Assembly: GCA_964188305.1 (NCBI GenBank) | Contig: OZ076896.1 | Direction: 5' to 3' (one strand) | From: Podarcis bocagei | Lineage: Eukaryota | Length of the DNA stretch: 64,000 nucleotides | Shown: positions 1,028 to 58,201 of the stretch, piece after piece | Layout: every line of letters begins with the position of its first letter | How positions within the stretch are numbered: the first letter of the stretch is position 1 | Made by a program: the position numbers and the translations under genes | The notes under the pieces: model-generated | What the model saw: only the letters and a program-made list of their open reading frames with translations | Database searches by the model: none | Told to the model about the DNA's origin: nothing

Positions 1028-1111
1028 CTTTTTATGAAGAGCATGAAATTCACTATACCGCTTTTCAACAAAGTGCTTTCTTCCATTCATTAGTACCTCT
1101 ATCTTAAAGAC
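1028..1111 (-). CDS. SNX24: Sorting nexin-24, coding exon 2 (PX domain; [28 protein letters not shown])
   Basis: Reverse complement reads tttttacag|GTC TTT AAG ATA...CAT AAA AAG|gtaaat. 84 nt, phase 0/0, canonical AG/GT. Peptide matches recalled vertebrate SNX24 residues 21-48. The gene continues beyond position 1. Confidence 0.96.
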
Positions 1112-2315
1112 CTGTAAAAACCAATGCAAGAGATTACTTTACCTGTTCAAAACCCTGTTTGCTTTGTGACGGGTTTAAAGGAAAGAATTACTGAAGCTGA
1201 TTTGTTCCCTCCCCCCAAACACAAGACACTCAGGAGATATTGAGGTGTAGCCACTGATTAATGAGTGTGCTGGTTAAATCCCCTGCTAACCAGTGGGCTC
1301 CACAAATACATCCAAGGACAATTAAGATTTGTGAGGCTTAAAAAACTTCCACTATACAATCAACCTAGTAGAAGTGCTTTTTTAGATATATATATATATA
1401 TAAAGCAAAACAACTCAAGAATATCTGGGTCTTTCAGTGATGTGCTATATAGTACATCAACAACCTTACACACATACAATTCAGTGATAGTGGTAGCATG
1501 TCTTGTGGAACACATAAAATATAAATGCAAAGACTATACTGCAGGTTAATTTCCACCTAACCTACATATTCATCTCTAGTCTCAGCTGGGCTTGCTCTAG
1601 TGTTTACACCATTAAAAAATGGTTTGGGCTCATTTTCTTTGCATGATGTGTATGACAGCTTTTGCTTCCTCCTGTGGAAGGTTGAAAGGCCAGCTGAAGA
1701 TGCTCTCTAGTTCCACTAATTAGTAGCCACTAACATGACATTTTCTTGATTTTCAGGTCACTGGGTCAGATCTCAGGGCAGGTGACAAGAAGTATCTCAA
1801 AATGCTCATGAAAACATAACCTAGCAAAACCAAGGCCAGCAGAAAAGCATAATAATGAGAGGCCATTGCTACTGTAACCAAATGTGCCTACTGCCAGGAT
1901 TTGTTCTATTAGGAGATCCTTGGATTAGATAAAGTCAGGGCACCAATATTAGAACCCAATTCTAGACCAGAAACTAATGAATTTTTAAAATTAACTTGAG
2001 AAAGGATTTTGGATAGGGAACATTGGCTTAGCTGCTGTGCTGTGCTAAACTAAAAGGGCAAAGGAGGAGCAAATTGGATGCAATTTGCCGGGTTGCTAGA
2101 CATCGAAAGTTGGGAGAGTGCTGTCACAATCAGATTTCTGGCTGGTCACTGTGAGAACAAGATACTGAACCAAAGAAGGCCTTCAACCTGAACCAACATG
2201 CTTGCGACAAGCCATGGTTTGGCTTAGCATTACATGTAAACGTGGCCAATATGCCTGAAGACCCCTGAACCTGTTCTCTACATTGTCACGAGGATACTTT
2301 TATCACTCTAATGTA

Positions 2316-2503
2316 CTGTATTTTTCACTCTATAAGACGCACCAGACCACAAGACACACCTAGTTTTGGGAGGAGGAAAACAAGAAAAAAAATATTCTGA
2401 ATCTCAGAAGCCAGAACAGCAAGAGGGATCGCTGCGCAGTGAAAGAAGCAATCCCTCTTGCTGTTCTGGCTTCTGGGATAGCTGCGCAACCTGCATTCGC
2501 TCC

Positions 2504-2544
<41 letters not shown>

Positions 2545-2598
2545 TTCCCCTTACTTTTTAGGAGGGAAAAAGTGAGTCTTATAGAGCAAAAAATACGG
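2316..2598. mobile_element. Non-autonomous Tc1/mariner-superfamily MITE (TIR CYGTATTTTTC..CTCTATAAGAC) with internal (AC)18
   Basis: TA on both flanks (2314-15, 2599-2600), inverted termini, long internal hairpin at about 2405-2475. Sister copy at 8904-9162. Confidence 0.85.
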
Positions 2599-2661
2599 TA
2601 ATCTGTTCACATTACATGGAGAAGGGAGATAGTTAGATGAGTCAGCATTTCAGATCATGTA

Positions 2662-4163
2662 CAGTGGTACCCCGCAAGACGAACGCCTCGCAAGACGGAA
2701 AACCCGCTAGACGAAAGGGTTTTCCGTTTTGGAGGCGCTTCGCAAAACGAATTTCTCTATGGGCTTGCCTCGCAACACGACAGCCCATAGGGAAATCTCC
2801 GGGACAGCGGGGAAGCGCAGCGCGTCTTCCCCACTGTCCTCGGACCTCCGCCCGCCGCGGGGCATCGGAACGAAGCTCCGATGCCGGGCGGCGGGGGGGG
2901 GGGAACGCCTCCTCCCGCCGCGCGGCATCGGAACGAAGCTCCGATGCCGGGCGGCGGGGGGGGGGAACGCCTCCTCCCGCCGCGCGGCATCGGAACGAAG
3001 CTCCGATGCCGGGCGGCGGGGGGGGGACGCCTCCTCCCGCCGCGCGGCATCGGAACGAAGCTCCGATGCCGGGCGGCGGGGGGGGGGGGAACGCCTCCTC
3101 CCGCCGCGCGGCATCGGAACGAAGCTCCGATGCCGGGCGGCGGGGGGGGAACGCCTCCTCCCGCCGCGCGGCATCGGAACGAAGCTCCGATGCCGGGCGG
3201 CGGGGGGGGGGGACGCCTCCTCCCGCAGCGCGGCATCGGAACGAAGCTCCGATGCCGGGCGGCAGGGGGGACGCCTCCTCCCGCCGCGCGGCATCGGAAC
3301 GAAGCTCCGATGCCGGGCGGCGGGGGGGGGGGAACGCCTCCTCCCGCCGCGCGGCATCGGAACGAAGCTCCGATGCCGGGCGGCGGGGGGGGGACGCCTC
3401 CTCCCGCAGCGCGGCATCGGAACGAAGCTCCGATGCCGGGCGGCGGGGGGGACGCCTCCTCCCGCCGCGCGGCATCGGAACGAAGCTCCGATGCCGGGCG
3501 GCGGGGGGGGGACGCCTCCTCCCGCCGCGCGGCATCGGAACGAAGCTCCGATGCCGGGCGGCGGGGGGGGGGGAACGCCTCCTCCCGCCGCGCGGCATCG
3601 GAACGAAGCTCCGATGCCGGGCGGCGGGGGGGAACGCCTCCTCCCGCCGCGCGGCATCGGAACGAAGCTCCGATGCCGGGCGGCGGGGGGGGAACGCCTC
3701 CTCCCGCCGCGCGGCATCGGAACGAAGCTCCGATGCCGGGCGGCGGGGGGGAACGCCTCCTCCCGCCGCGCGGCATCGGAACGAAGCTCCGATGCGGGCG
3801 CGCGGCATCGGATGGCTTTCCTGAAGACTTGGGGTGGGAGGAGGGTTTTCCTTCCCACCGCCAACATTCAGAATGCTGTTCTGAATGTTTGCAGTGGGGA
3901 GGAAAAACCCTCCTCCCACGCAAGCCCCGGGAACAGAGGGAAAGCGCTGCGCGCCTTCCCCTCTGTTCCCGTACCTGTCCTGAAGGCTTGCGGTGCGGAG
4001 AAAAGCCCTTCTCCGCACCACCAGCCTGGCAAGCGGTTTCCCTAGGAACGCATTAATTGATTTTCAATGCATTCCTATGGGAAACCGTGCTTCGCAAGAC
4101 GAAAAACTCGCAAGAAGAAAAAACTTGCGGAACCAATTAATTTCGTCTTGCGAGGCACCACTG
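2662..4163. mobile_element. Tigger/pogo-like non-autonomous DNA transposon carrying a palindromic minisatellite
   Basis: TA flanks (2660-61, 4164-65). 22-bp TIRs CAGTGGTACCCCGCAAGACGAA / CAGTGGTGCCTCGCAAGACGAA (2 mismatches). No transposase ORF. Confidence 0.88.
2851..3812. repeat. GC-rich tandem array, about 16 copies of a 58-64 bp self-complementary unit
   Basis: Core GGCATCGGAACGAAGCTCCGATGC starts at 2861, 2924, 2986, 3046, 3110, 3170, 3232, 3290, 3353, 3413, 3471, 3531, 3594, 3653, 3713 and 3772. Length varies only through the G tract (about 7-12) and the AACG/ACG linker. Confidence 0.97.
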
Positions 4164-6342
4164 TACTGGAATCTGCATGGAATCTGTCTACACAGCACAC
4201 TTTTGGTCACCTTCACCTTTTCTCTCCCTTTTCTTAACCTGATTCTGGAAGCTTAAGCCATTAGTGCCAATGACTGTGAGTACTAATTCTTCAAATTAAA
4301 TGCTCTGACACACATGACAACAATGCTCCATCGAGCCAGGGTTGCAGAGATCCAAAGGACTAACAGCCAATGAGAATTGTAATGTCAGAAACAGCTTATA
4401 CTCACACATAGGCACACAGGCTCTTTCAGACATTATGCTGAAAGTGAATGGGGAAGCCAGTAGTAGAAAACTCTGTCTCTACTCCTTCCACATTCAGAAA
4501 ATATCTGAAGACTGCTATTCTTTTGGTTATGCATTCACGTCAGTATCCCTCAAAATAGTGTATTTATCATCCGTACTATTAATTAAATTTCAATTAGTCC
4601 TACTGTGATTATCTGATCACTATTTAGAATCTCAGCATGAGTACTATGGTCAGCCTAATGTAGAACATAGGTGTATTCTGAAGCAATACAGATTTGTGCA
4701 TAAAAGAAAGGGAAACTTTCCTTTAAACATTTTGAGGTTTTATGAAATATGGACATGCATGTAGAAATTTTCAAAATAAGCAGTAAATGTCATCTATAAA
4801 AGATCTTACCAAGCAACAAGTAATGAGTTTCTAGCAATTTAAACCCTAACAATTGTGTTTACATGACATGAACAATCCCCATATAAAATATTCATACATT
4901 TACCATACCATATTCTTATCTTAAAGTTGAGAGAATAATGGGACTTCCCATAAGGACTGGGAATCCCCGACAGCCTCCTGCCACCTCAATGTCTAACCAT
5001 CCAAAAATATTCATATCCCATTCTAGGAAGAGGTTAACCATTGCCTTCCCCCATCCCTGCCCTAGGACAGAAGCAGCTATTGGGAGAAATGGTAGTTTCT
5101 CTTTCAAGGAAAATGATAGACTTTGGGGGAGCAAGTAGAGTGACAATTTTCACTAGGACACAGGATTCAGAGTTAAGAACACTTCCTGCAAGCCATGGCC
5201 TCAGTTGTGAACAAATCCCATTTTTGATTGGCTGTAACTTCTTAAGTAAACAGAAAACTCGTTAATAGGTTAAATGTGTATTATTCATTTATCTGGTTTG
5301 ATCCATTTAGCAACCGGCAAACATACAGTGCTATACATTGTCTTTTAACTGCATAATCAGTAAGTGCATTAAATAGAACAGATAAGATCTACAACGATTT
5401 GTCAGCCAAATAATCTTAATTTCTCACCATTACCATAATAAAATCCATGCTCAATCCGTAGCAAAGTATTTTTTCCTGCATGGAGCCAATACCTAATAGG
5501 GATAACAATTAGACATTTAAAATGTCTGCCAGAATTTAACTCATATAAACCAAGAATAGGAGGAATAGCTTTTGGTTTGAAGTACGTGTGGAAACTCATA
5601 TTTTCCCCCTCTGACCATCATGCCAAGTAGATGACATTTTATTTTATAACCATCAAAAGGCTGGAGAGGATGAAATGGGGCCTATTAAATCAAAGTCCTG
5701 TTTTAAGAATTCTTTTTAGGAAGCCATAACAAAGTCTTTCAAGGTTCTTGGATCAATCTGCATAACAGCTGTCTTTATTTAAAATTATTTTCTAACATAG
5801 ACCAGTAAGTCATCATCTGATTACCAGTTATAATAAAAATATGAAAGACAGTCGTAAGTTGGGGAGACTATCTCCCATCTCAGTATAGCAAAAAAGCATA
5901 TCCATCCCAATTTCCAGAACCAGAACCATATTCCTTCTCTGTCTGCATTCCAATTTTAAGCCTTGTGATTGAGAGACAGTGACATAATGGGAAGGGCTAT
6001 AGCTCAGTGTAGAATATATGCTTTGGATCAGGGTCAAAAACTCATCAATATATAAGCGAATTGCCAAGTGACACCCTAAACCTAGATTACGGTTGCCACA
6101 ACAGAATGTCTAGGCGCCATTTTATTTTAAAATGAAATTAACATCATCATTATTTCATTTCAATACCACTTTATATTTTTTTAGAAAAATCTCAAAGTGC
6201 TTTACAGCACATTAAAAAATCAAATAAAACAAATTCAAGCTTCAAGGAAAATGTTTCAGATCCTTCTCTAAGTGACGGTTTCCTTTCCCTATATATATTT
6301 ACCTACTTTATTTAAATAGCTGCCCCATAGCAGCAGTACTCT

Positions 6343-6631
6343 AGGAAGCAAGTGTGGTGTAGTGGTCAGAGTGTTGGACTAGGACCTGGAGATCCGGGTT
6401 CAAATTTCGAATGTTCCCGAAGTTTAATGTTTTGGTTTTCGAATGCAGAAAACCCAGAAGTAAATGCTTCAGTTTTTGAACGCGCCTCAGAAGTCGAACG
6501 GCTTCTGCTGAGTTTCCCCCCAATTTTCTCTACTGAATTTGCAGACTGCCTTTTGTGCCTAGGTTTTCGAACGTTTCGGAACTCGAACAGTCTTCTGGAA
6601 CGGATTACGTTCGAAAACTGAGATACCACTG
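6343..6631. mobile_element. tRNA-derived SINE head (about 6343-6405) fused to a Tigger-like MITE lacking its left TIR
   Basis: A/B-box-like GTGGTGTAGTGG...GGTTCAAAT followed by a MITE body ending GATACCACTG-TA. Confidence 0.6.
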
Positions 6632-13732: not shown

Positions 13733-13968
13733 NNNNNNNNNNNNNNNNNNNNNNNNNNNNNNNNNNNNNNNNNNNNNNNNNNNNNNNNNNNNNNNNNNNN
13801 NNNNNNNNNNNNNNNNNNNNNNNNNNNNNNNNNNNNNNNNNNNNNNNNNNNNNNNNNNNNNNNNNNNNNNNNNNNNNNNNNNNNNNNNNNNNNNNNNNNN
13901 NNNNNNNNNNNNNNNNNNNNNNNNNNNNNNNNNNNNNNNNNNNNNNNNNNNNNNNNNNNNNNNNNNNN
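13733..13968. other. Assembly gap (236 N)
   Basis: Run of N. Confidence 1.
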
Positions 13969-21474: not shown

Positions 21475-21715
21475 CAGTGGTACCTTGGGTTAAGTACTTA
21501 ATTCGTTCTGGAGGTCTGTTCTTAACCTGAAACTGTTCTTAACCTGAAGCACCACTTTAGCTAATGGGGCCTCCTGCTGCTGCTGCGCCACCACTGCTGA
21601 TTTCTGTTCTCATCCTGAAGCAAAGTTCTTAACCTGAGGTAATATTTCTGGGTTAGCGGAGTCTGTAATCTGAAGCGTATGTAACCTGAAGCGTATGTAA
21701 CCCAAGGTACCACTG
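21475..21715. mobile_element. Tigger-like MITE
   Basis: TA-CAGTGGTACCTTGGGTTA...TAACCCAAGGTACCACTG-TA. Confidence 0.9.
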
Positions 21716-39915: not shown

Positions 39916-40245
39916 CATGAAACAGTAGCCAACGCACCTGACTTGTTTTTCTCTCTTACCAACCGGCATAGGGGGAACCTCACACCGAAGAGCTCTCGCC
40001 TTACTATTGCGGGTCTTTATACAGCCTTGTAGCGCAGGACGCAAAACTGAGGGAATTTGGCTGGTGCTTAGAGGTGCGTCTCACAGCTTTTCCCGCACCA
40101 CCCCCTTAGGGCGAATGGAATGCGCCATGAAAGCCTCACGGCGGCCCGAGCTGTACCAACCCGCTCCTTAAAAGGGGGGGGGGGAACGGAGGGTAAAGAA
40201 AGAGGAGGGAGAGTTTAACCTCGCCTTTTCCCGCCCACCACTCAC

Positions 40246-40305
40246 CGTATAGCCCCTCTCCAACTCGCTCTCCTCATAGCGGAACGACGGGATGAAAACC
40301 TCCAT
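40246..40305 (-). CDS. SNX24: Sorting nexin-24, coding exon 1 (MEVFIPSFRYEESELERGYT)
   Basis: Strong Kozak context GCACCATGG, 60 nt, donor ACG|GTGAGT. Joins exon 2 in frame and matches the recalled SNX24 N-terminus. Not in the ORF track. Confidence 0.96.
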
Positions 40306-40640
40306 GGTGCGGTCGCTGGTGCGCAAGAGCGCAGGCTCCGGTTATGGAAGCGACTCCGGGACGGGAACGGGGGCGGGGGAATGGGAAAAGGGGCGGGGAG
40401 AGCGCGCGGCCGCGGGAAAGGGGCGGGGCGGGGGAGCAGGAGACCCTCCACGGCCCCGAGGAGCGCAAAGCCTGGCGGAAGGCGCCGTCGGCCAGCGCCA
40501 ATCATGTGACTGGCAGGGACAGCCTTTTCCTATTTCTATGGGAACCGCCGATGCTCCCCACGTGATTCCTGGTGCAAGATGGCCCGGGAAAGGGGAGGGG
40601 GCCACGGGGAGAAAGAGGCAGCGGCCGCATCAGGAGGGCG
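40306..40640 (-). promoter_or_regulatory. SNX24 CpG-island promoter / 5' UTR
   Basis: CpG-rich. GGGGCGGGG boxes at about 40370, 40390 and 40420-40433, CCAAT at 40498-40502, TCATGTGAC at 40502-40510, CACGTG at 40559-40564, YY1-like CAAGATGGC at 40575-40583. Confidence 0.8.
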
Positions 40641-40907: not shown

Positions 40908-41590
40908 ACATCAACTTCGTTTAACTGGTCATGTTGTGCCTTCCAAAGCAACTAGAGTGGTACCTCTGGATACGAACGGGATCTGTTCTGGAGCCCCGTT
41001 CGCATCTAGAAGCAAATGTAACTAGCGATGGCACGTCTGTGCACGTCGCTTTTCACCGCTTCTGCGCATGTGCGTGACGTCATTTTGAGCGTATGCGCAA
41101 GCGGCGAAAGCCGGAAGTAATGCGCTCCGTTACTTCTGGGTTGCTGCGGAGCGCAACTCGAACGCGCTCAACCCGAAGCGCATTCAACCCGAGGTATGAC
41201 TGTACTCGATTCCAAACTTAAAAATGGAAAGCGTAATGCTGGTGGTCAACAAAAGGTTTAAAGACTCTCAAGGCAAACCTAAAAAAATGTAGTATTAACA
41301 CAGACAACTGGGAAACACTGGCCTGTGAGCGGTCCAGTTGGAGAACAGCCTTTACCAAAGGTGTCATGGGCGTTGAAGACGCTCAAACTCAGGACGAAAT
41401 GGAGAAACATGCTAAGAGGAAGGCATGCTTGGCAAACCCTCACCATGATCAACTCCCGCCCAGAATCCTATGTCCCCACTGTGGAAGGATGTGTGGATCC
41501 AGAATTGGCCTCCACAGTCACGGACTCACTGTTAAGACCATGTTTATGGAAGACAGTTTTACTCAGCTACGAGTGATCGCCAAAGAAGAT
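40908..41590 (+). mobile_element. RTE-clade LINE 3' fragment interrupted by a Tigger-like MITE (40955-41202)
   Basis: Decayed peptide motifs (GHVV, PKQL, KLKNGKRNAGGQQK, WETLACERSSWR, CPHCGRMCGSRIGLHSH). MITE flanked by TA. Confidence 0.75.
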
Positions 41591-44678: not shown

Positions 44679-44904
44679 CAGTGGTACCTCAGGTTACATA
44701 CGGTTCAGGTTACAGAGTCCTCTAACCCAGAAATATTGCTTCAGGTTAAGAACTTTGCTTCAGGATGAGAACAGAAATCGTGCTCTGGTGGCGCGGTGGC
44801 AGCCGGAGGCCCCATTAGCTAAAGTGGTGCTTCAGGTTAAGAACAGTTTCAGGTTAAGAACGGACCTCCAGAATGAATTAAGTACTTAACCCGAGGTACC
44901 ACTG
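44679..44904. mobile_element. Tigger-like MITE (first of an inverted pair)
   Basis: CAGTGGTACCTC...GAGGTACCACTG-TA. Same family as 21475 and 55927. Confidence 0.9.
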
Positions 44905-44927: not shown

Positions 44928-45139
44928 CAGTGGTACCTCGGGTTAAGTACTTAATTCGTTCCGGAGGTCTCTTAACCTGAAACTGTTCTTAACCTGAAGC
45001 ACCACTTTAGCTAATGGGGTCTCATGCTGCCAGAGCACGATTTCTGTTCTCATCCTGAAGCAAAGTTCTTAACCCGAGGTACTATTTCTGGGTTAGCGGA
45101 GTCTGTAACCTGAAGCGTACGTAACCCGAGGTACCACTG
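44928..45139. mobile_element. Tigger-like MITE (second of an inverted pair)
   Basis: TA flanks. Opposite orientation to 44679-44904. Confidence 0.9.
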
Positions 45140-48694: not shown

Positions 48695-49055
48695 CAGGGG
48701 TCAGCAAACTTTTTCAGCAGGGGGGCTGGACTATATTTTTTGGGGGGAAATGAACGAATTCCTATGCCCCACAAATAACCCAAAGACGCATTTTAAATAA
48801 AAGTACACTTTCTACTCATGTAAAAACACCAGGCAGGCCCCACAAATAACCCAGAGATGCATTTTAAATAAAAGCACACTTTCTACTCATGTCAAAACAC
48901 CAGGCAGGCCCCACAAATAACCCAGAGATGCATTTTAAATAAAAGGACACATTCTACTCATGTAAAAACATGCTGATTCCTGGACCGTCCGTGGGCCGGA
49001 TTTAGAAGGCGATTGGGCTGGATCCGGCCCCCGGGCCTTAGTTTGCCTACCCATG
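48695..49055. mobile_element. hAT MITE (family of 17500-17739) with a triplicated 71-bp internal unit
   Basis: Same termini. The unit starts at 48766, 48837 and 48908. Confidence 0.88.
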
Positions 49056-55926: not shown

Positions 55927-56143
55927 CAGTGGTACCTCGGGTTACATACGCTTCAGGTTACAGACTCCGCTAACCCAGAAATAGTACCTCGGGTTAAGAA
56001 CTTTGCTTCAGGATGAGAATAGAAATTGTGTGGCAGCGGCGCAGCAGGCCCCATTAGCTAAAGTGGTGCTTCAGGTTAAGAACAGTTTCAGGTTAAGAAT
56101 GGACCTCCGGAACGAATTAAGTACTTAACCCGAGGTACCACTG
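55927..56143. mobile_element. Tigger-like MITE
   Basis: TA-CAGTGGTACCTCGGGTTA...TAACCCGAGGTACCACTG-TA. Confidence 0.92.
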
Positions 56144-58037: not shown

Positions 58038-58201
58038 NNNNNNNNNNNNNNNNNNNNNNNNNNNNNNNNNNNNNNNNNNNNNNNNNNNNNNNNNNNNNNN
58101 NNNNNNNNNNNNNNNNNNNNNNNNNNNNNNNNNNNNNNNNNNNNNNNNNNNNNNNNNNNNNNNNNNNNNNNNNNNNNNNNNNNNNNNNNNNNNNNNNNNN
58201 N
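58038..58201. other. Assembly gap (164 N)
   Basis: Run of N. Confidence 1.

Follow-up and report, generated by a model that had tools for sequence, protein, structure and literature searches.

A DNA transposon carrying an array of hairpin-forming, CpG-dense repeats has very recently inserted into the first intron of SNX24 in the genome of Podarcis bocagei. The locus lies in a 64,000-nt stretch of contig OZ076896.1 (assembly GCA_964188305.1), here called the window, whose positions are used throughout. The element is 1502 bp long (2662-4163) and the array sits in its interior. It is best understood as a long, non-autonomous Tc1/mariner-superfamily variant of an abundant family of short MITEs, recently inserted and bringing the array along as cargo from a donor copy, a reading to which we assign a probability of roughly 0.8. 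That the locus represents a real and very recent transposition follows from the empty site found in related genomes, and the exactness of the TA duplication argues against misassembly.

The ends of the element are terminal inverted repeats of 22 nt, identical at 20 of 22 positions (chance expectation, 0 matches), and a TA stands immediately outside each of them (Table 1). This bears out the sequence-only reading of the window, an initial inspection of the letters, which had placed the array between intact terminal inverted repeats of a DNA transposon. A 12-nt motif, TCGCAAGACGAA, recurs with its variants eight times in the element, always in the arms, and 12 times in the whole window, where chance predicts 2.4 occurrences. 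Past the terminal inverted repeats, the two arms are just 63% alike. When the whole element is folded as a single strand, its non-array interior forms a string of robust hairpins, including one at 2799-2845 with a folding energy of -18.7 kcal/mol (z -6.5). In the same fold the array has no single preferred pairing, and the centroid structure leaves it open; a specific long-range structure of the array was dropped as a candidate because of this ambiguity. None of the ORFs of the element gave a Pfam match, and the window contains no transposase ORF. A protein-coding reading of the array was likewise set aside, given the absence of a Pfam match, unit lengths that shift the frame, and long ORFs in all six frames, which arise because the repeat is free of stop codons.

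Table 1. Features of the element and of the neighbouring SNX24 exon, in window positions
Feature	Position	Strand	Basis and remarks
SNX24 exon 2	1028..1111	-	Splice borders and 4az9 match; element lies upstream of the exon, in intron 1
TA target-site duplication, left copy	2660..2661		Sequence; empty alleles join 2657->4162 and lack 1504 bases (element and one TA)
Left terminal inverted repeat, 22 nt	2662..2683	+	Pairs with 4142-4163(-), 2 mismatches
Left arm	2662..2844	+	12-nt motif x5 (2672, 2688, 2704, 2740, 2770) and three hairpins
Left-arm hairpins	about 2680-2742, 2751-2796, 2798-2844	+	Folding
Fifteen full tandem units, 58-64 nt	2845..3755	+	Near-palindromes, each with G run and AACG/ACG spacer
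16th unit, truncated (40 nt, 3756-3795), then 17-nt partial left-stem repeat	3756..3812	+	Right edge of array
Long composite hairpin, right interior	3830..3925	+	Paired in MFE and centroid; self inverted match 85% over 87 nt
Hairpin	3928..3972	+	-19.7 kcal/mol, z -7.5; resembles left hairpin 2799-2845 by eye
Two more hairpins	3980..4085 (about 3985-4025, 4032-4085)	+	Folding, self inverted matches
Right arm	4086..4163	+	12-nt motif at 4092, 4108 (+) and inside terminal repeat
Right terminal inverted repeat, 22 nt	4142..4163	-	Match to left terminal inverted repeat
TA target-site duplication, right copy	4164..4165		Sequence and empty-site joint

The array was delimited in two ways that agree. 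TRF reports a repeat at 2845-3805 with a period of 60, 15.8 copies and 94% matches (score 1660), and splitting on the invariant core hairpin yields 16 units of 58-64 nt, of which 15 are full and one is truncated. The array thereby spans 2845-3812, where the sequence-only reading had seen about 16 tandem palindromes of some 60 nt at 2851-3812. The units differ very little from one another, with five substitutions in total, of which units 1 and 7 have two each and unit 10 one, and the most divergent units are those at the edges of the array. The remaining variation concerns the spacer, which takes both of the forms originally described (AACG or ACG), and the length of the G run. The expected run of 7-12 G residues is present in most units, and a run of six occurs where an A interrupts it. 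Units 7 and 10, which are three units apart, have an identical C>A variant, and a further TRF period, of 181 nt, has 95% matches. The shared variant and the longer period suggest that the history of the array included at least one three-unit duplication step. None of the unit variants represents a compensatory change between hairpin arms, and in unit 7 the C>A and the G>A change both affect unpaired partners.

Each unit is a near-palindrome that folds on itself from end to end. The stem can be read directly from the letters as 27 positions with an A.C and a G.G mismatch, two G.T pairs and a GAA loop, as initially proposed, and minimum-energy folds of the units form 21-23 bp of it, with loops of 3-7 nt and spacers of 3-4 nt. 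The hairpin is stable on both strands, as DNA and as RNA. Folded as DNA, the unit reaches -29.6 kcal/mol on the plus strand and -26.0 kcal/mol on the minus strand (z -7.9 and -6.4; 0 of 200 shuffles equal), and the corresponding RNA folding energies are -52.8 and -46.0. All tested units fold end to end, with z from -5.5 to -7.9, and no shuffle did equally well. Because each unit is itself a palindrome, the array as a whole is palindromic about two alternating kinds of symmetry centre, a property that had also been anticipated: its long inverted repeats are centred either on unit junctions (I1, I2 and I13) or on a hairpin loop (I5).

The composition of the array sets it apart from its surroundings. 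Its GC content is 0.79 and its CpG observed/expected ratio 1.16, against 0.41 and 0.37 for the window, and 173 CpG dinucleotides fall within 961 bp. The array is a CpG island by the formal definition (length > 200 bp, GC > 0.5, CpG observed/expected > 0.6), in keeping with its earlier description as very CpG-dense and CpG-island-like, and it contains 15 GGGCGG boxes. The suggestion that it is prone to G4 formation holds in part, since the canonical pattern is present, albeit in just 5 of the 16 units and on the plus strand alone.

SNX24 is encoded on the minus strand. Its exon 2 runs from 1111 to 1028, bordered by an AG at 1113-1112 and a GT at 1027-1026, and matches PDB 4az9 (sorting nexin-24, PX domain) with an E value of 2.5e-14. 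Exon 1 lies near 40246-40305(-), which makes intron 1, the intron that holds the element, about 39 kb long. The edge of the array is 1734 nt upstream of the exon-2 acceptor, in agreement with the 1.7 kb given in the sequence-only reading, which also correctly placed the array within the pre-mRNA. It is the template strand of SNX24 that contains the G runs, and the pre-mRNA contains the C-rich sequence complementary to the array. Separately, four canonical G4 motifs cluster at 40174-40609 around SNX24 exon 1, whose coding start is near 40305 on the minus strand; this cluster is presumably the gene's own promoter CpG island.

The evidence for transposition comes from sequencing runs of related genomes. 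Twenty runs from ten studies share at least part of the stretch, 12 of them half or more of the sampled words, and the 24 listed runs carry seven organism labels. Contigs (k=31) of four runs, X1, X4, X5 and X11, were compared with the window. In X4, X5 and X11, one contig each joins 2657 directly to 4162, skipping 1504 bases (1502 + 2), at a depth equal to that of the single-copy flanks. The joint contains five ambiguous letters, as the sequence at both ends of the element predicts. These three genomes have a precise empty site, which establishes the mobility that had been proposed for the cassette.

X1 does not appear in the table of joints, and its state was assessed from contig geometry and depth. 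Here the 82nd and later letters of a 265-nt contig (depth 67.5) match 4164-4347, and the sole depth recorded at 2619-2630 is likewise 67.5. In the empty-site contigs of X4, X5 and X11, 78-83 letters lead back to the boundary of the upstream repeat, and the geometry in X1 is alike. Since 81 letters running into a repeat of about 10^4 copies would break a contig, X1 very probably has the empty site as well. The upstream repeat is another very high-copy sequence, at window 2284-2600, which ends 61 nt before the element and reaches a summed contig depth of 2-4.5x10^6. It contains a near-perfect hairpin of about 85 nt at 2397-2481 (best Rfam score 38 bits, far below gathering) and an (AC)18 tract at 2507-2543.

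The flanks of the insertion show how close these genomes are to the window. Over 4162-4700, X4, X5 and X11 differ from it by 7-9 letters in 539, and X1 is nearly identical, with 0-1 differences per listed piece over 4164-4700. The occupied site was seen in none of the contigs of the four runs. The insertion, known from the assembly alone, is very young and private to the assembled haplotype, individual or population. At 4318-4442, X1 yields two contigs, with depths of 59 and 39. One agrees with the window at every letter, and the other has four differences, three of which are also found in the other organisms. The X1 individual is heterozygous, and carries the haplotype of the window adjoining the insertion site. 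A further local difference lies a short way downstream. All four runs have AT at 4538, X1 and X4 also have a 19-nt insertion at 4544, and gap counts of 21-22 in the contigs of X5 and X11 imply a matching 19-nt insertion there. At 4538-4544 the window has either a 21-bp deletion or an assembly omission.

The element belongs to a family that is abundant in all four genomes. Over the terminal ~150 bp the contig depths add up to about 3x10^6, compared with 60-100 in the flanks (~3x10^4 times single-copy), which implies some 10^4 copies with a likeness of at least 90%; contig depth differs from copy number, and such depth-based figures are orders of magnitude. In many contigs nine letters separate 2755 from 4088, so the usual family member is about 180 bp long. 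Other contigs join 2800 to 3933 or 3973 and represent intermediate forms with one hairpin and no array. Depth is 10^5-10^6 over the inner hairpins and 0 to 1.5x10^4 over the bins of the array, and integration of the latter gives roughly 25-50 kb of unit-like sequence per genome, again as a depth-based order of magnitude. The unit is rare compared with the arms, yet it is present in genomes that lack this insertion (array-bin depth up to 1.5x10^4). In the empty-site genomes, contigs show differences in G-run length at 2893, 3018 and 3563, so they must span the G run into the sequence that follows. This suggests that unit-to-unit junctions exist elsewhere in those genomes. Since the insertion is young and the unit also occurs in genomes without it, the array most likely came as cargo from a donor copy rather than growing in place.

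Searches for further copies of the element or its parts were negative within their scope. When the arms and the unit were compared by BLAST with the remainder of the window, no second family copy emerged. Exact scans of a metagenome collection with a 25-nt unit core and a degenerate terminal-repeat pattern gave no match, nor did an exact scan of a viral collection with the unit core. A full-text literature search with the tip of the terminal repeat retrieved cloning primers with a KpnI site and nothing else.

The window also contains at least five other MITEs of about 210-250 bp that carry the 13-nt tip CAGTGGTACCTCG in exact or near form, at 21475-21715, 40955-41202, 44679-44904, 44928-45139 and 55927-56143. 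Four of them have TA on both sides and one has TT/TA. Their interiors are unrelated to the element studied here and carry subterminal repeats of their own, 16-17 nt long. Further matches to the tip occur at 6619, 12165, 26861, 31515 and 45769. From the common tip we infer that one transposase lineage may serve several MITE families. Among other features of the window are a 71-bp tandem repeat at 48766-48970 (2.9 copies, 94% matches) and runs of N at 13733-13968 and 58038-58201.

The assignment to the Tc1/mariner type is based on the TA duplication, the terminal inverted repeats, the non-coding interior and the contrast between occupied and empty site, all of which are present here. The pogo/Tigger group is defined by its transposase, which has a pogo-type DDE domain and CENP-B-like DNA-binding domains; the tip of the terminal repeat presumably resembles Tigger ends. 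The TA duplication and the terminal inverted repeats are features of the Tc1/mariner superfamily at large, and the narrower Tigger/pogo-like label of the sequence-only reading is at best a candidate. MITEs are small, usually under about 600 bp, and reach high copy numbers. At 1502 bp the element exceeds this usual size, whereas the short form of ~180 bp and the high depth at the ends, a rough guide, point to an abundant family.

MITEs that carry repeats are well described (PMC3879986, PMC12628747). The kind is already known in frogs, clams and flies, and the element is clearly a fresh example of it, neither a new kind of element nor a new function. It has a central tandem array between transposon ends, as in MITEs of the miDNA4 and Xstir type. 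Unit-less forms of the family are common, and unit-bearing contigs occur in genomes without this copy (k=31 contigs), so that the number of units may vary within the family. In kind, the element is closest to miDNA4 (Scalvenzi & Pollet 2014; summaries in PMC12628747, PMC9659126 and PMC12054243), a Tc1/mariner MITE of Xenopus tropicalis with a satellite motif. According to these summaries, miDNA4 is, like the present element, vertebrate, Tc1/mariner-type, non-autonomous and mobile, with an internal tandem motif. The miDNA4 motif occurs singly or in arrays of variable number, as may also hold for the family described here, and it has been proposed as a seed of satellite DNA. The same accounts give miDNA4 a length of 300-600 bp, an AT-rich composition and a single motif in 61% of copies, whereas the present element measures 1.5 kb and its array has 16 units at 79% GC. 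Unlike the miDNA4 motif as it is summarised there, the unit here is an end-to-end near-palindrome, and the likeness is one of description rather than of sequence comparison.

Other systems are similar in part. The Xstir and Xmix elements of Xenopus (Hikosaka & Kawahara 2004, as reported in PMC12628747 and PMC3879986) also have tandem repeats derived from a MITE interior, with stem-loop formation during replication as the proposed cause. The model reported for them joins two neighbouring elements, whereas here the multiplied part is the central hairpin of one element, and nothing points to a second. As reviewed in PMC3879986, PMC12628747, PMC9659126 and PMC12054243, the mechanisms proposed for such arrays all invoke stem-loops that disturb replication (Izsvak 1999; Hikosaka & Kawahara 2004). 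DTC84, pearl and DINE-1 (PMC3879986) share with the element an inverted-repeat cassette around a central array of core repeats, and in DTC84 a palindrome near each repeat junction has been proposed as a hotspot for change in array length. In these elements, however, the target duplication is AA and one end of the array is flanked by a tetranucleotide microsatellite; they may be related to Helitrons and carry core repeats of about 160 bp, usually at most 5-6, compared with the 60-nt units in 16 copies here (PMC3879986). Membership in this group is ruled out by the TA rather than AA duplication and by the absence of a microsatellite flanking the array. Foldback elements such as FB of Drosophila and Tetris (PMC9659126, citing Dias et al. 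2014) are likewise described as non-autonomous, with self-complementary repeats, and able to seed satellites. In that description their long terminal inverted repeats are built of tandem repeats, whereas the element has 22-nt ends and a central direct array, which rules out membership. A report on lacertid Tc1/mariner remnants (PMC10058329) was found to have no bearing on the family of this element.

A plausible origin can be outlined from these features. In a donor copy, multiplication of the central hairpin, a GC-rich near-palindrome of 60 nt, would have produced a minisatellite of 16 units. Growth of the array may have proceeded by tandem duplication, for which the stable hairpin could have prompted replication slippage or template switching, with unequal exchange as a further candidate. 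The small number of substitutions, the divergence of the edge units and the variant shared by units 7 and 10 are signs of recent expansion. The whole composite would then have been moved by a transposase supplied in trans, for which the 22-nt ends and the repeated 12-nt subterminal motif would serve as recognition sites and which would duplicate TA at insertion. In this outline we infer the duplication mechanism, the array-carrying donor and the trans-acting transposase, as well as the lack of function discussed below.

It is also conceivable, though unlikely, that the element arrived with one or a few units and that the 16-unit array grew here by slippage. Near-identical units, the greatest divergence at the edges and variable G runs are the pattern of a locally homogenised, fast-mutating array, and depth at places 2859/2860 relative to the array bins suggests that unit-to-unit junctions are outnumbered by copies in which the central hairpin is single. 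Against growth in place, the insertion is missing in four close relatives, one of them nearly identical in the flanks, which leaves little time for about 15 duplications, and the genomes without the insertion have contigs that run across G runs into the following unit sequence. Arrival of the array as cargo from a donor copy is therefore preferred. A different concern is that GC-rich hairpin repeats and homopolymers are difficult both to sequence and to assemble, so that the number of units, the lengths of the G runs or, with still lower probability, the entire insertion could be wrong. Such an artefact is improbable, although no contig of the four runs (k=31) spans the occupied site or the array, variation between units is mostly in homopolymer length, and the 21 extra letters that all four runs have at 4538/4544 show that the window locally differs from every run. 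The precise TA duplication and the exact skip of 1504 bases are a signature of transposition and not of a chimeric join, and the substitutions that mark units 1, 7 and 10 impose an order within the array, which one would not expect if a repeat had been collapsed or inflated. A broader idea, which we regard as quite doubtful, is that a lineage-specific process repeatedly turns the central hairpins of several unrelated MITE families into palindrome arrays in this genome; hairpin-primed template switching in the course of gap repair that follows excision would be one candidate for such a process.

The possibility that the array acts as a functional cassette, supplying small-RNA precursors, ADAR targets or a mobile CpG-island, Sp1-box or G4 module that affects SNX24, is highly improbable. 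The hairpins are very stable as RNA on both strands, the array qualifies formally as a CpG island with its GGGCGG boxes and five canonical G4 motifs, and the element resides in a transcribed intron. However, an Rfam search of 2000-6500 at permissive thresholds returned nothing beyond generic hairpin matches, all below threshold, the best at 30 bits against a gathering score of 70. Canonical Drosha substrates have a stem of ~35 bp, a large apical loop and single-stranded flanks. The unit hairpins are shorter, with stems of 22-27 bp and loops of 3-7 nt, and have no single-stranded flanks. A canonical cluster of miRNA precursors was rejected on these grounds of stem, loop and flanks, together with the lack of a match to a curated family. 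The original proposal that hairpins of pre-miRNA size might serve as Drosha or Dicer substrates has accordingly been weakened, also because the locus is absent in relatives. The unit variants, moreover, are not compensatory, and any GC-rich insertion that is still young should have CpGs that have yet to decay. Recent arrival accounts for the CpGs retained here as well as protection from methylation does. A conserved host function is impossible because the locus is empty in relatives. The default and most likely view is that at this locus the element is a passenger of the intron, neutral or mildly deleterious, and has evolved no function in the host.

If the doubtful idea of a lineage-specific process were true, active MITEs would be mobile starting points for GC-rich satellites and for DNA of CpG-island type inside genes. 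The locus itself is a clean example of a cut-and-paste transposon carrying a structure-prone, CpG-dense minisatellite into a gene. With an insertion dated by the empty site in close relatives and with an almost undiverged array, it is a convenient natural marker of DNA-transposon activity that is still under way in wall lizards. Questions that it could help to address include the expansion of palindromic repeats, the speed at which a new CpG-rich insertion becomes methylated, and whether such an insertion disturbs intron transcription.
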